From: Eutreptiella sp. 'Long Island Sound 2002'
Taxonomy: Eukaryota; Protista; Euglenida
DNA length: 64,000 nt
Assembly: GCA_964036045.1 (NCBI GenBank)
Contig: OZ038379.1
Coordinates: 3,348,001-3,412,000, forward strand
Reading direction: 5' to 3'
Shown here: piece after piece, positions 26,433-45,607 of the stretch
Numbering within the stretch: the stretch's first letter is position 1
How the letters are laid out: each line of letters begins with the position of its first letter
The notes under the pieces: generated by a model
Database searches by the model: none
What the model was told of the DNA's origin: nothing
The model's input: the letters and a program-made list of their open reading frames with translations, nothing else
Made by a program: the position numbers and the translations under genes

Positions 26433-29366
26433 ATGCCAAATGAATGTATGTATTTTGTGCTCGCAAACCGCTCGGGACGAAAGACAAGTCGCCGTGTAAT
26501 GTGTATTGGAATGACCCTAATTGTTCGTAGCACGTTACTCGCCGATGTGGGGCAAGGTGTGGTGGTCGAGTAAGCTTTGATTCTTTTGCAGGTGAAACAA
26601 GCCAGCGTAGTTTGCAACGGGATGATGTCAAAGTACGTCTTGGCCATTACGTTCTAAAACATACATTGCGGACTTCATTTTTTGGCAAAGTGAAGTTGGC
26701 CCAACACGAGATCACGGACCATCTCCTTGATTTGTTCATTGTCGATAAAAGGCGAACGAGCAAGTATGCGCGGTTTATGGTCACAGAAGCTTCGTCTACT
26801 TCCTCTTCTCCGCTTACTTGAATCACCCTTCAACCTGTGCAGGCATAATGTGTCCGATAAGATCAAGCGCGAGATTGGTCTTCTCAAGTTGTTACGACAT
26901 CCACATATCTCGCGCATCTTTGAAGTAATTGACACTCCTTCTGATGCCGTTGTTGTCTCGGAGCATTGTACGGGCGTGGAGGTTTTTGAGTACGTCCATG
27001 AGCACGGTTATATACTTGAAGGTGTGCGGTCTTAGCTCAATTAGATTTAACTTTGAGCAGAAGGACGATTGCGGCGTGATGCTTGCTTCATGGTGTAATT
27101 GTGGCGGTCGCTCGTGATGGCATATTTTCATTCGCAGACGAGGCGCGCTCTTTGTTTCAACAACTATTCCTTGCTTTACTGTACCTACATTACCTACAAA
27201 TCCCATTTGGCGGCTTGGCTCAAACCAACATTTTTGTGGAGGAAGGTCATCATGACAAGGTGTGTGTGTGCAAGTGATGTCAATTTCTCCTTGACGTATG
27301 CGACGCGATGTTTGATCGTGTGTTATGTATGTTATAGCGTGTCTATTAATGTTATGTATGCCTCTCGTCGTCAGGGCTGCTACTTGCTCCGTTCCTCTGT
27401 AGCCTCAAATGAAGCTCATCGTGGCACCATTTTGCACGTTGGAGCCAAGCAGTGGTAGTGCATTCATGCAAACAACCACTGCCGGTGCCAATCCATATGC
27501 CGCTCCGGAGTGTCTAAAGTCCACCTCTCGAGTCCACCCAAGCTCGGCCGACGTGTGGACGTGTGGGACAATTCTGTACATGCTTGTTAGCGGATACCCA
27601 CCTTATCAACAGGTATGCATCTCATATCTCACAGCCACGCTAACCATCTCGCGTTACCGTTTTCTTTCCGCATTGCATTTGAAAGTAGCCCATCGCATTT
27701 AAGCCACAAAACATTCGGACACTCTTAAGGCACCGGTTTGCCCGTTTCAACTATTTGCTATTTGCTTGTGGCTTACTCTTAACTGCAGGAAAATGTCATG
27801 TTGTTGGTCGAACAAATGGAAAACGAGTCTTACAGCATACCCACCCATGTGTCGGCGGAGTGCCGTGAGCTCATCATGTCGATGTTGCAACCCGATCCCA
27901 TCCGGAGGCCAACATTGCTCCAGATTTTGGACAATCCGTGGGTGAAGGTATGCAAAAGAATGCCGTGTTCATCTTCTTTGGAAAGATGTTGAGTCAAGTG
28001 GAACCTTGCGCGGGGGCTAAGGTTTTGATTGGGATTTCTTGGGGGTTGCGGGGGCTGCGCGGCTTTGAAGTCAAGGTAGCACTCCCCTGGAGAACGGTTA
28101 CCCATCGACGTGAAGCACCGCAAGTCGACATACGATGCTCAAAACAAAACGGCATTTCGACGGTAAAAGGGATAATCCATTTGTGCATATCTTCGCACAT
28201 GAGTGCACGTTTTTCTGACGGCGAGCTAATAAAATCAATAATTCCGCTCATATTATGCAACGCTCCAATAAGTTGAAGCAAACGAAACGATGTTGAAAGA
28301 CGAAAGCCCAATGTAGCACGAGGTGGCGTCGTAGTTCAAAGCATCCATTTCAGGGCAAGTCGGGCGCGGTTGCATCGTTGCAAGCGCTCTTGTTCACGGA
28401 GTGTGTGGACAACTGAGTTGTCCCATAACACGACGCGGTCCCGGATTGCTAATGTTCATGGGTCCAGGAGCCAGCTGCAACAAGGCGTGCACTTGGGGCG
28501 TGGTGGTTAGGACGATCAGCGGGCCCGAATGGGCGCACAGCAGATGAGCTGTGGACGGGATGCCGAGTTCATGGGCGGACCACGAACGGGACCTGGGGGG
28601 CCTTGGGGTGAAGGGGGGGGGGATGCGCACAGGGAGCAGGCCACCATACTCCAGGCCTGAAGGTGGCACGCCATGAATGCCACGGACAGAGGCAGAACGA
28701 CCCGTGTGGTTAAGACCGACACATGAGGTTTGATGGTTTGGCAGACGATACCTACCATAAGTCGCATTCATTCGGGTTGTGTCGTGAACTCATACTTCCA
28801 TTTTCAAATCCTAAGCAATCAACACGAAATCGTTGCAAACCCCATGAATGGTGGTGAACTGGTGTGAGACGGCGTGTGCTATGTGATCCAAAGCGGAGGG
28901 AGGGGGCAAGCGGGTTATGGGCGCCAATTCACACGACAAAGTGCACGATGGGCACGTTTGGTGTGTGGTGGGCGCAAGCTCCGCTCCCCAAACCCGCTAG
29001 CGGTTCCACCGCTGGCACGCTTTCGCTTTATATAAAACGGTGCTCATCCACGCACGCTTTGTTAATATGTGCAGTATAATGTGCGGCCGACAATTTGTTT
29101 TTTGTTGAAATCAATTCAGAAAAAAAATTGTATCGCTCGCGTTTCAATGTCGCGGCGTTGGTACCCGATCGGAGATGGATGATAGCTTTGTTAAAGGGAT
29201 CCTTGGTATGTCGTGAGGATTGCTTCTTGTCACGATGCAGGCTAATTTGCCAGAGGAACTCGTGCATTTGATGCCCGAAGTTAGTTGTGACGATCCTTGC
29301 ATTGACCATCAATTATTGCGATACGTTGCACACAAGTGCGACATACCGTTTGAAGTGGCATTAAAG
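26433..29366 (+). CDS. SNF1/AMPK-alpha (SnRK1)-like pseudokinase with a UBA/autoinhibitory-like segment; 3' end not resolved
   Basis: Exons 26433-26445, 26592-26763, 26843-27021, 27138-27259, 27403-27612, 27789-27947 and 29241-29366. All introns are GT-AG, phases are compatible, and they give 327 codons with no stop. SNF1-type segments: LGHYVLKHTL..FGKVKLA, KIKREIGLLKLLRHPHISRIFEVIDTPSD, DEARSLFQQL, YAAPE, DVWTCGTILYMLVSGYPPY, ECRELIMSMLQPDPIRRPTLLQILDNPWVK, ANLPEEL...IDHQLLRYV. Exon 1 is the least certain. Confidence 0.85.
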
Positions 29367-30175
29367 GTATTGTTGCAATTGTGGTTTGGTTGGAATGGAT
29401 TGAAAGTGGTCGATGTTGTATGGGAGGACCTCGCATTTTGTTTCTTGGCGTCACCCTACATTGCTCAAAACCCCATTCCGTGAGCTTCAGCTTTATCTTA
29501 GCTCATCCTAGAAAGCCCACTACGCCCAGCAACCAACACCGTTGCGGGAACATCCCGTCCCGGTGCAGCCCACTGCACGGGAGTAGTCAACTGGTCGCGC
29601 TATGTCAGTCAGCAGCAACGGGCGGTTTGTCAACGACGCCCTGGGGCTGATCCAGACAAGCAACACAAAGGCCAACACTAGCAACAACTAGCAGGAAGGC
29701 GATGAGAGCGGGCGGTGTGGGCATTGTGCGAGACGGATGAGAAACGTGGCCCTCAGTGTCCCTCTGACGATCGGCAAGGGTCGCAGCATTCCGACCTTAC
29801 CCGCCCACTTGGGGGAGGGTGCTCCGTAGGGGCGTCCTCTGGTGGTTTGTCAGGAGCCGTAGGGTTGCTGCCACCCCAAGTGGGCACTCCCTCCACATCG
29901 GATTGTGATCAGCAAAAGGCGGATTCTTCACTGCGTGTTTGCAGATGTCTGCATTGCGAGACGCTGGTTCTTTACCGCGATTCGATACCGCAACCCCACA
30001 CCCAAACGACTCTACTCCCACTCTACACAACAACTCTATACCGTGACTCTAGACCACGACTCTGCACAACAACTCTACTGTGTGCGCGCATATGTAGGGC
30101 TCCGCCCTGCTCTGCACCAGAGGGAGCGCGTGGCGCAACTGAGTGGGTCGTGGGAAATGTGAGTGTTTCCGGGGA

Positions 30176-30320
30176 CGAACGCGGAAACGACACCAGCAAG
30201 AGCACCGGCCGCAGCGGCCGACAGAAAGTAGCGACCCGACGCAACATGCGAAGGGAAGAACGGGTGACTGTCCAGGGCCCCGTAAAGGAGCAACAACCAG
30301 ACGGAATGTCACACAGGGGG
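30176..30320 (+). repeat. Dispersed repeat (SINE-like 3' segment), also at 32966-33110
   Basis: CGAACGCGGAAACGACACCAGCAAGAGCACCGG...CGGAATGTCACACAGGGGG is shared by both copies. Confidence 0.85.
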
Positions 30321-30354
30321 TGGCATCTACACTCTGCTGCACATCTTTTTCCAG

Positions 30355-30477
30355 ACCGAAAGGCACCTCTGGTACCACTTATGAGGATTTTGTTTTGCTG
30401 AGCTTCCGCACTTGCCGGGAGAGCCGCCTCAAAAACGCGCGCGCGGCGCGCGTACTGCAAGACCTCCACCTCCGCAG
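30355..30477 (+). CDS. Candidate symmetric phase-2 exon (possible continuation of the pseudokinase)
   Basis: catctttttccAG|A CCG AAA...CGC AG|GTTCTG; PKGTSGTTYEDFVLLSFRTCRESRLKNARAARVLQDLHLR. The linking exon was not found. Confidence 0.3.
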
Positions 30478-31555
30478 GTTCTGACAATGTCGCTGCGCAC
30501 GGGAATCAAGACCGAGATCAGTGTGGTGTATCATGTTCTGCTCGACAGCAGCTTGCGAGCGAGGAGCCAGAGGATGAATACGCGGTGGTGCAAAGCCGAC
30601 CCGCGTGACGTCTCCGATACACACTGTGAATCAGCGATGTCGACAAGGCCCATTTCGCCGTTTGCAAGAGCATGCAGCGCGAGCTTGAAGGCTCGGGAGC
30701 CTTGCGAGTTGAATGGAAAGATCATTCCAGTGACCCTCACTCTTCCTGACCCGAATGAGGTCTCGTGTAGCGGAGCTGCAGCCTCAGACCCAACGGTACA
30801 GTTACTGAGCTCTCCTTCGATGGTGGCAGCCGGGACATTGGGTTGTGCGGTGACAGGGACCGTAATGCCTGAGAGATCTGCAGGTGTGCGCCGTTGTGAA
30901 AGATGCGATGGCCGCGCGGCCACTGCTTCCATTTGGGGTGGGCGTGCCATCGTTTCACGGATCATACCCTGACCCTTGCAGCCCCTAGGGCTTCTCCTGC
31001 ACGGCGCGCGCGATCCATGCCTGATCCACGGTCTTTCCCCCGTCCGCGAGCGCCACACCGGCACCTGATGACACACAGCCAGGGCAGCATGTGAGCCGCA
31101 GCAGGGCCCCTGATGCTGCGTCACCGTAGCACGTACCCGGGGGCAACGCAGGACCGCGTGCTGCTGCTGCATCCCCAGAGCATGCAGCTCAGGCGCCATC
31201 ACCACATCGTGCGGGCATTTGCACCGGCTACAGACGGGTCGCGGCGGCTCGGGACTCATCGGCGTCCGAGGCCTCGCAAGCGCGGAGGGCCCCACAGGAA
31301 TGCACACGGAGGTTCATTCGTGAGAGATGACAAGCGTTGCCTGAGTCTCAGAGGGCACAACGGCTCGCACCGGCGCACCGGGCGGGGGCTCGGGTGGAGA
31401 CCGTACCCCGACAGCCCCCCCCCCTTGCAGCCGCCGGCCGAAAGTGTTAGTGTGGGCATACCCAAACTTGGCGCTGCAATATTGTCAATATCAGTACTTC
31501 TGCTCCCAAATTTCCGCTGCCCCCCTTTGTGTGGACTCAAAAATGGTGATAGTAT

Positions 31556-32231
31556 GCACGAAGTCGCCCCCCCCTACCTCCCCCCCCTACCTACCCCCCC
31601 CCCTACCTCCCCCCCCTACCTCCCCCCCCTACCTTCCCCCCCCTACCTCCCCCCCCTACCTTCGGCTCGCTTCGCTCGACAGACGGCTCGCTTCGCTCGA
31701 CGCGGGGGCCAGCCCCCGCACCCCCCTTAAATAACATGACTCCTGCGGTGGCCACAGACCGCCTTGTGTGTGCACCGCCTTTTGTGTGTACCGCCTTGCC
31801 TGTGGCCCCTTAAATAACAAGACTCCTGCGGTGGCCACAGGCCGCCTTTTGTGTGTTCCGCCTTGTGTGTGCACCGCCTTCTGTGTGTACCGCCTTGCCT
31901 GTGGCCCCTTAAATAACAAGACTCCTGCGGTGGCTACAGACCGCCTTTTGTGTGTTCCGCCTTTTGTGTGTTCCGCCTTGTGTGTGCACCGCCTTCTGTG
32001 TGCACCGCCTTGCCTGTGGCCCCTTAAATAACAAGACTCCTGCGGTGGCCACAGGCCGCCTTTTGTGTGTTCCGCCTTGTGTGTGCACCGCCTTCCCCCC
32101 CCATACCCCCCCCTACCTTCTCGACCCCCCCCCCTGACTCCCCCCCCTACCTCCCCCCCCAACCCCCCCCCCTACCCCCCCCCCCAACCCCCCCCCCCCT
32201 ACCTCCAAGGTAGGGGGGGGCGACTTCGTGC
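31556..32231. mobile_element. MITE-like element with 23-bp terminal inverted repeats enclosing C-rich repeats and a minisatellite
   Basis: GCACGAAGTCGCCCCCCCCTACC (31556-31578) and GGTAGGGGGGGGCGACTTCGTGC (32209-32231). A TA target duplication is possible if a 1-nt indel is allowed. Confidence 0.65.
31728..32095. repeat. Hierarchical minisatellite (~80-120-bp units built from CCGCCTT-GTGTG subunits)
   Basis: TAAATAAC(A)...GACTCCTGCGGTGGC recurs four times. Confidence 0.9.
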
Positions 32232-32365: not shown

Positions 32366-33193
32366 GGGGGGTGTCTGCGTGTGTCCCCCAAAAGCGCCGC
32401 TGATTCAATTTTGATTTTCCCTCAGCCAATTTTGGGTGAAGATTTTTTGGGGGGCAGACAAGGAGGAGGGGCACAGCAAGGCAGGAGAGGCAACCAGAAC
32501 AGCGGGAACAGGGAACCAGAATGGAGCAGATGGTGGAGCGTGCGCATGGGAGGCAGCGACAATAAAGGGGATGTCTTGGCCAGCCAGCCCCGTCGCTACC
32601 AGGTGCCAGGGCAACCCCTGCTCAACCGGCATCAGGTGGGGGGTGTCTCCCGCAGCCCAGATGGGCTGTTTGCGCAACAGGAGCGGGAGCCCATCAGGGG
32701 CAGACCAACCGTGAGGGGGAAAAGGACATATGGTAGACGGCCGGGACAGCGCGTGGAGGAACAGGGCACCTGGGCCTCACAGAAACACAGCGAGGCAGGC
32801 TATGGACGGCCTGTGGACAGAGGTGTGTGGACAGCAAAAACAGTCAAACAACCCCGGCAACAACCAGCACATCCTCAATACGCCAATTATTGGGCGCCGC
32901 TGACGCGCAAACGGCACACCATGCCACATTCAGCACAGTCCCAACACACCAACTACTGGGCTCCGCGAACGCGGAAACGACACCAGCAAGAGCACCGGCC
33001 GCAGCGGCCGACAGAAAGCAGCCACCCGACGCAACATGCGAAGGGAAGAACGGGTACCGTCCAGGGCCCCGTAAAGGAGCAACAACCAGACGGAATGTCA
33101 CACAGGGGGGTGTCTGCGTGTGTCCCCCAAAAGCGCCGCTGATTCAATTTTGATTTTCCCTCAGCCAATTTTGGGTGAAGATTTTTTGGGGGG
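32366..33193. mobile_element. ~650-bp insert flanked by 89-bp perfect direct repeats (32366-32454 / 33105-33193)
   Basis: GGGGGGTGTCTGCGTGTGTCCCCCAAAAGCGCCGCTG...GATTTTTTGGGGGG on both sides. The insert ends in the dispersed repeat also seen at 30176-30320. Confidence 0.75.
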
Positions 33194-42000: not shown

Positions 42001-42428
42001 ACGTCATTCAAAATGTTTGCAATGTCCATCAATGATGGCCTTGTGTGTAGTTTTAATTACTTGGATGGACCTGTGATTTCCGATTTGTGTTGTTTCCATT
42101 GATCTTCTTGCTTGTCCTTCAGTCTATCCATTTTCCTTGGCACTGTGTGCTGTCTATAGTATTTGACTGGCTTCCAGCACTGGATGCTGCCACCATGGGC
42201 CCCGTATTTGGGTGTGCACACTCAAATCACAAACACCCCGTCCCCGCATGGCCCGTGGTTGGAGACAAAGCTTTGGCACAAGCAGATGACGAGGGTTCAA
42301 GAACCCATGCCCACATTGCAGCGCTTGGCGGCATGTGTTTTGATCCTCAAAGTTTTGCTGCTCTATGCTGAGCCGAGGATGCGGGTCATCGCGCTGTGCC
42401 ATATTCTATAATATCTCCCTGCCTCGTA

Positions 42429-42550
<122 letters not shown>

Positions 42551-45322: not shown

Positions 45323-45607
<285 letters not shown>

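Follow-up and report, generated by a model that had tools for sequence, protein, structure and literature searches.

A candidate AMPK/SNF1-like pseudokinase gene, with its catalytic motifs replaced, in the euglenid alga Eutreptiella sp.

INTRODUCTION

Pseudokinase paralogues often regulate their active relatives, as is known for STRAD with LKB1, for the Tribbles proteins, and for the JAK JH2 domain. STRAD alpha is the pseudokinase partner of LKB1, which is itself the T-loop kinase of AMPK, and most AMPK-related kinases carry a UBA domain after the kinase domain. Tribbles (TRIB1-3) and STK40 form a described pseudokinase family (PMC7586955, PMC5382568), and the CAMK-derived pseudokinases Tribbles, STK40, and PSKH2 have been reviewed together (PMC7586955). 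Among euglenozoans, Trypanosoma cruzi is reported to have two distinct AMPK alpha subunits (PMC8177656). In a literature search of incomplete coverage, which does not prove novelty, we found no account of a pseudokinase derived from AMPK/SNF1 alpha. Here we analyze a nuclear, intron-split gene of the euglenid alga Eutreptiella sp. 'Long Island Sound 2002' that a preliminary description, made from the DNA sequence alone, had proposed to encode a catalytically dead AMPK alpha paralogue. The gene lies on the + strand of a 64,000-nucleotide (nt) stretch of contig OZ038379.1 (positions 3,348,001 to 3,412,000, assembly GCA_964036045.1). We refer to this whole stretch as the window, and all coordinates below are positions within it.

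The predicted protein shares several features with AMPK alpha, SNF1, and SnRK1 alpha (KIN10). These include the N-lobe sequence with its lead-in before the glycine loop, the alpha-C region (..KREI..LRHPHI..), the T-loop Thr in ..T..YAAPE, the core of the C-lobe, and a UBA/autoinhibitory segment that directly follows the kinase domain and has an intron inside it. It differs from them in that all ATP-binding and catalytic residues are replaced, in carrying insertions of 6 residues ahead of beta-8 and of 1 residue within the T-loop, and in having no detectable beta-binding C-terminal domain (PF16579). Moreover, the kinase domain is 34 to 38% identical to our SNF1/SnRK1 references, whereas those references are themselves approximately 77% identical across diatoms, plants, and red algae.

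Like Tribbles and STK40, the protein would be a non-catalytic CAMK-group descendant that keeps its C-lobe as a docking platform. However, Tribbles proteins retain the Asp of the catalytic loop, their DFG position reads SLE, and their C-terminal tail binds COP1 and docks on the N-lobe. In the protein considered here the Asp is lost (FGG), PFC takes the place of DFG, and a segment resembling the UBA/autoinhibitory domain (AID) follows the kinase domain; a DQxVP-type motif was not found in its tail. STRAD alpha, an allosteric and non-catalytic pseudokinase of the AMPK pathway, is comparable as a functional analogy only: it is an ATP-binding member of the STE20 group with conservation across eukaryotes, whereas the protein here is CAMKL derived and without the ATP-binding residues, and no orthologue of it was detected. 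Finally, with AMPK alpha1 and alpha2, trypanosomatids provide evidence of more than one gene of the AMPK alpha type in euglenozoans. Both are, however, described as alpha subunits of an AMPK complex (PMC8177656), whereas the gene analyzed here appears to be catalytically dead and is without a detectable C-terminal domain.

RESULTS

Nucleotide-binding and phosphotransfer residues are replaced within a conserved kinase fold

Seven exons between positions 26433 and 29366, joined from their window coordinates, yield 981 nt, or 327 codons, without a stop. Searches of solved structures (PDB) were run exon by exon, and the joined domain was used in local profiles, alignment, tree building, and simulation. 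Exons 3 to 6 match the Pfam Pkinase profile (PF00069) collinearly, at profile positions 43-95, 99-133, 154-198, and 221-263, and exon 5 scores above the Pfam gathering cutoff by itself (35.3 bits).

The replaced motifs are distributed over exons 2, 4, and 5. Exon 2 (26592..26763), which matches AMPK alpha1/alpha2 structures, encodes the N-terminal lead-in, a degenerate glycine loop, and the beta-3 strand. The loop reads RTSFFG (26669-26686), with two of the three glycine-loop Gly residues gone, and VAVK/VAIK has become LDLF, in which the Ala and the Lys are both replaced and the beta-3 Lys position is occupied by Phe53 (26735-26737). Exon 3 (26843..27021; Pkinase match of 31.2 bits) extends from the alpha-C helix, including Glu72, to beta-5 and the hinge. 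Exon 4 (27138..27259), a weak Pkinase match, contains alpha-E and a degenerate catalytic loop. In the alignment to SNF1/SnRK1, HRDLKPEN is replaced there by FGGLAQTN (27206-27229), with HRD and the catalytic-loop Lys gone; the same loop also aligned to 'iihrdikpsnllv' of CaMKK2. In exon 5 (27403..27612), which carries the activation segment, APE, and alpha-F, DFG is replaced by PFC (27427-27435), with loss of both the Asp and the Gly. Exon 6 (27789..27947) covers alpha-G to alpha-I and the end of the kinase domain at Arg272.

The elements of the bilobal kinase fold and the docking core of the C-lobe are conserved. Individual residues and motifs that are kept include alpha-C Glu72, catalytic-loop Asn152, APE, the alpha-F Asp-x-Trp-x-x-Gly, and alpha-H/I Arg272. 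In the alignment to the SNF1/SnRK1 references, Thr186 (27472-27474), in the context ..QTTTAGANPYAAPE, falls on the T-loop Thr. The HRD Arg, which normally reads the phospho-Thr of the T-loop, is lost although Thr186 is kept. The four motif replacements named in the preliminary description are therefore all present in the alignments as claimed, and so are the features it had listed as retained in the kinase domain, namely, the alpha-C Glu, a Thr172-like T-loop Thr, and the C-lobe.

A pseudokinase is defined at the sequence level by absence of the beta-3 Lys, the HRD Asp, or the DFG Asp, and here all three of the three are absent, as first proposed. With the residues for nucleotide binding and phosphotransfer all replaced, the sequence excludes canonical binding of ATP/Mg and canonical catalysis. 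We also considered whether the protein could be an atypical kinase, still active because it makes up for the lost residues, as do WNK, which relocates the lysine, and CASK, whose catalysis is Mg independent. Lys37 and Lys39 after the remaining loop glycine, together with the kept Asn152 and Glu72, would be in keeping with such an enzyme. However, the Lys37/Lys39 pair is also found in active AMPKs, where it has no catalytic use, and the HRD Asp (the base), the DFG Asp (the metal ligand), and the catalytic-loop Lys are all gone. We know of no kinase that works in the absence of all three together, and we regard residual activity of this kind as highly improbable. Bulky hydrophobic residues, namely, Phe53, Phe34/35 (in the glycine loop), and Phe145 (at the position of the HRD His), may fill the adenine pocket and the spine, and a pocket filled by Phe may hold the kinase domain in a fixed conformation.

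As a separate observation, P0140 and its relatives P0151 to P0155 constitute a small stramenopile-type group of SNF1-like kinases. The glycine loop of P0140 is degenerate (..HPFHFNIHLQVK..), and its VAVK, HRD, and DFG motifs are kept. Another SNF1-like lineage may have lost some of its ATP-site motifs, or the pattern may come from truncated gene models.

The open frame continues into a UBA/AID-like segment

Every intron of the gene has the form GT..AG. The donors are of the form GT[AG]T[GT] (GTATGY, GTGTGY, GTATTG), the acceptors end in YAG, and 14 of 14 splice dinucleotides are intact. The introns interrupt the reading frame after codons 4 (phase 1), 61 (phase 2), 121 (phase 1), and 162, 232, 285, and 327 (each phase 0). 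The seven phase-compatible exons without a stop could accordingly be rebuilt as first described. Because exon 2 lacks an in-frame ATG and a TAG at 26528-26530 closes the frame ahead of it, some upstream start exon is required. The putative exon 1 (26433..26445, tentative) consists of an ATG and 10 further nt and ends in phase 1. It is in frame with exon 2, and its donor, GTATGT, resembles the other donors of the gene. At the other end there is no stop codon at 29366, and the gene continues beyond the seven-exon model.

Exon 7 (29241..29366), in phase 0 on both sides, would encode a linker and the first part of a UBA/AID-like segment. By itself, exon 7 gave no PDB or Pfam match and scored 3.1 bits against a profile of the SnRK1/SNF1 linker and UBA. 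Searching with the C-terminal parts of SnRK1/SNF1 proteins, which had been obtained via a relative of exon 5, we found an eighth exon on the + strand by tblastn (E 1.4e-4). The similarity begins exactly after an acceptor AG at 30476-7, in phase 0. The secure part of exon 8 (30478..30579), identified by both tblastn and profile matches, encodes ..EISVVYHVLLDSSLR.. / ..SLRTGIKTEISVVYHVLLDSSLR.., the third helix of the UBA-like autoinhibitory domain, in which ..VVYHVLLD.. resembles VAYHLIID and VAYYLLLD of AMPK/SnRK1. Its G+C content by codon position (0.47/0.41/0.735) is coding-like. Exons 7 and 8 together align end to end with the linker and UBA profile at 19.1 bits, compared with 7.8 bits for the best of 2000 shuffles, and the UBA/AID-like domain is interrupted by the 1.1-kb intron 7. 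The earlier claim that a UBA/autoinhibitory-like segment follows the kinase domain thus appears to hold, but only with exon 8 included.

Two other readings of this region were set aside. Exon 7 can be read through 29367-29483 as a terminal exon, and we dropped this version in favor of splicing to 30478. The tblastn alignment can also be extended upstream into 30352-30477, a segment that contains a stop; we judged that extension to be chance. A single-sequence AF2 prediction for the exon 8 open reading frame (ORF) had a pLDDT of 30 and was uninformative. In the diatom Fragilariopsis cylindrus, an SNF1-type gene (L004:501-3079) likewise has an intron in the linker/UBA-like region, near residue 303. 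The annotated protein is there about 20 residues shorter than that of Thalassiosira, which may be due to a misannotated exon boundary or to an intron in a similar position.

Sequence comparisons point to an AMPK/SNF1-like origin

The N-lobe exons strongly favor AMPK. The top PDB matches of exon 2, lead-in included, are solely AMPK alpha1/alpha2 (E 6e-8), with SNF1 at 4.5e-3 and MARK at 1e-2, and the best match of exon 3 is AMPK alpha2 (E 1.7e-13), with MARK at approximately 1e-9. Over these two exons AMPK alpha is preferred to MARK by 4 to 5 orders of magnitude. The joined domain also scores highest against the local AMPK/SnRK1 kinase-domain profile (198 bits, versus 184, 169, and 156), a result driven by exons 2 and 3. 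Exon 5, by comparison, matches generic CAMK/CAMKL structures (CaMKII, MELK, CIPK, SNRK, AMPK), and the best match of exon 6 is the SNF-related kinase SNRK (E 1.8e-8), with TRIB1 among its weak matches.

In a quick maximum likelihood (ML) tree, the model is sister to the SNF1/SnRK1 clade with low support. In a careful ML tree of 31 rows, it falls inside the CAMKL-type clade (support 100/99), where it sits in a polytomy on a branch of 3.2 changes per site, against mostly 0.01 to 0.2 for the AMPK tips. Placement outside that group was not seen, in agreement with the preliminary description. Forcing a clade of AMPK plus the model costs 0.96 log-likelihood units and is not rejected (approximately unbiased test, p 0.34). 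The model keeps 23 of 77 AMPK-specific columns, compared with a median of 7 for unrelated CAMK-like kinases and 21 to 28 for KA1-type CAMKL kinases.

These results bear on a second explanation, in which the gene encodes a live pseudokinase descended from some other UBA-bearing CAMKL kinase (MARK, BRSK, SIK, or SNRK-like) and has no particular link to energy sensing. The polytomy would fit such an origin, as would a count of AMPK-specific columns no higher than that of KA1-type CAMKL kinases, the closeness of exon 6 to SNRK and of exon 5 to CaMKII and MELK, and the fact that no AMPK C-terminal domain was found in the window (see below). A UBA domain after the kinase domain, being common to most AMPK-related kinases, also fits it. 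However, exons 2 and 3 with the pre-domain lead-in place AMPK alpha1/2 first by a wide interval, the AMPK/SnRK1 profile gives the top total score, the quick tree groups the model with SNF1/SnRK1, albeit with low support, and the third UBA helix is AMPK/SnRK1-like. We consider descent from another CAMKL kinase distinctly unlikely. The pseudokinase is, in our assessment of its sequence, AMPK/SNF1 derived or very close to AMPK/SNF1, with membership in the subfamily proper undecided by the tree. Of the earlier designation as an AMPK alpha paralogue, the AMPK/SNF1-like origin is supported by exons 2 and 3, while the tree does not resolve assignment to the AMPK alpha subfamily proper.

Open frame, selective losses, and codon composition argue for selection

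We then asked whether the gene is maintained or decaying. A neutral-drift simulation of substitutions in the 361 secure codons gave stop-free replicates in 1.6% of cases at 80% identity and in 0 of 2000 at 60%. We also compared losses among 31 columns that are conserved both in AMPK references and in other CAMK-like kinases. Approximately 2 of 11 catalytic or ATP-binding columns are kept, versus 17 of 20 structural columns, and the remaining 3 of the latter are conservative changes (Fisher p 4.6e-4). Codon-position G+C content in exons 1 to 7 is 0.557/0.349/0.517, compared with a flat value of approximately 0.47 in the short introns. Because the frame is open despite the divergence, the losses are selectively catalytic, and the codon composition is of coding type, these three lines argue indirectly for a pseudokinase maintained by selection rather than a decaying pseudogene. 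Extreme divergence with the frame and splice sites intact likewise indicates that the gene evolved as a translated gene.

The principal competing explanation is that the locus is a dead or dying, unprocessed partial duplicate, comprising only the kinase domain and AID, whose open frame is left over from an earlier functional period. Against this, 361 codons without a stop or frameshift at approximately 63% residue divergence are very unlikely under the neutral simulation, all of the splice dinucleotides are intact, losses are concentrated at catalytic positions while structural ones are kept, and codon-position composition is coding-like. A number of observations nevertheless weigh on the other side, against a live gene of AMPK descent. 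The first is the careful tree, which leaves the model unplaced relative to AMPK proper. A second is the 5' end: with no in-frame start in exon 2, the start hangs on the 13-nt exon 1, and that particular choice is a guess, only plausible. At the 3' end, beyond the third UBA helix, the frame stays open after exon 8 (30580..30972, + strand) to a TGA at 30970-30972, but the coding status of this tail is doubtful. Its codon-position G+C content (0.546/0.646/0.562) is highest at the second position, which is not a coding pattern; it has no Pfam or PDB match and low Atlas recognition; and it contains a single donor like those of the gene, at 30884 in phase 1. There is accordingly no clear terminal exon.

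The same side includes the C-terminal domain. No AMPK beta-binding domain (PF16579, AdenylateSensor) was found in the window, including the 33 kb downstream of the gene, when all six frames were searched with a full-length profile and, by tblastn, with 97 C-terminal parts; the references were plant, diatom, and red algal, and a very divergent or out-of-window domain could escape such a search. Weak collinear tblastn matches near 57.5 kb and 62.2 kb (E 0.14 to 0.44) were examined as candidates and attributed to chance because their profile scores are at most 3.5 bits and they have no Pfam match. Searches of very large collections of proteins and contigs likewise left the gene an orphan. A search of 1.84 billion representatives with exon 5 gave no orthologue and no match above 59% identity over 43 residues; it returned only generic CAMK-like and multi-kinase proteins, the best full-domain relatives being approximately 35% identical. 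A word search with exon 5 found no short fragments (38 to 122 amino acids [aa]), JGI metagenome contigs gave 481 pattern matches and 0 relatives, and in the word-indexed collection the exon 8 frame recovered only P0270, its own ORF call. The locus is rich in repeats, which fill introns 6 and 7 and the downstream DNA. Lastly, the evidence for selection would speak for a long period under selection and yet be compatible with very recent death of the gene. On balance, we consider a dead duplicate rather unlikely. The description of the gene as intact and live, as first put forward, is sustained by the open frame and the selective losses, but not as regards its ends, given the guessed first exon, the missing stop at 29366, and the unfixed 3' end.

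How the locus is represented in public data deserves mention in its own right. An ENA assembly contig (ERZ25074135 ctg9567, 456,663 nt) is identical to window positions 20487-40972, and P0270 is a prokaryote-style ORF call on it. The pseudokinase is split in this collection into 'proteins' of 89, 64, and 161 aa, two of which are weakly tagged Pkinase. Because this genome is represented there by prokaryote-style ORF calls only, protein-level searches do not see its spliced genes. Two short matches of exon 5 were rejected, neither being from this genome: P0112 comes from a contig of NCBI assembly GCA_001179505.1, and P0149, which has EF-hand ORFs next to it, from a metagenome contig in ENA.

Repeats within and downstream of the gene

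A 145-bp interspersed repeat (families D5 and D6) is present in two copies that are 98% identical, one inside intron 7 (30176-30320) and one downstream (32966-33109). An exact 89-bp duplicate occurs 739 bp apart at 32366-32454 and 33105-33193. Between 31556 and 32231 lies a 676-bp foldback-type element whose terminal inverted repeats of 24 nt (31556-31579 and 32208-32231) are perfect; it has C-rich CCCCCCCCTACCT arrays just within both ends and internal tandem repeats of approximately 99 to 115 bp (31676-32095). The repeats downstream of the gene suggest nested mobile-element fragments. Farther away, long (GT)n/(CA)n-type microsatellites at 42420-42540 and 45330-45600 give poly-Cys-Val frames in conceptual translation. 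The long ORFs that neighbor the pseudokinase gene gave no Pfam family.

DISCUSSION

The explanation that we favor, to which we assign a probability of roughly 0.5, is that this locus is a live gene for an AMPK-like pseudokinase. The protein would be a non-catalytic descendant of an AMPK/SNF1-type (CAMKL) kinase, in which a pseudokinase domain is followed by a UBA-like autoinhibitory segment. Since the window yielded no C-terminal domain for binding the beta subunit, a role inside the AMPK heterotrimer is without support. What the preliminary description suggested, a scaffold or dominant-negative role, can be put forward by inference only.

The protein most likely acts outside the heterotrimer. 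There it could be a free-standing competitor, decoy, or allosteric partner of whatever proteins bind the kinase domain of AMPK alpha by docking. As a decoy it might engage the T-loop kinase or phosphatase, or substrates, and so modulate energy signaling. Among the roles considered, a decoy function seems likeliest: the protein has no detectable beta-binding domain but has kept its T-loop Thr, P+1/APE region, C-lobe, and AID. This specific mechanism is in itself nonetheless unlikely. It is also possible, though we hold the full proposal only tentatively and consider it rather doubtful, that the gene is a euglenid-specific pseudokinase derived from AMPK alpha, kept by selection after loss of its active site and apparently of its beta-binding domain, and tuning the T-loop phosphorylation or substrate access of the true AMPK.

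The weight of the finding is modest, as it concerns one orphan gene in one genome. Should the full proposal be true, the gene would be the first dead paralogue within the lineage of AMPK alpha and a dominant-negative version of the energy sensor that occurs in nature. If expressed, it would provide a natural, non-catalytic version of the AMPK alpha kinase domain with its AID, which could reveal surfaces that matter independently of catalysis and could show how a photosynthetic euglenid tunes its energy signaling.

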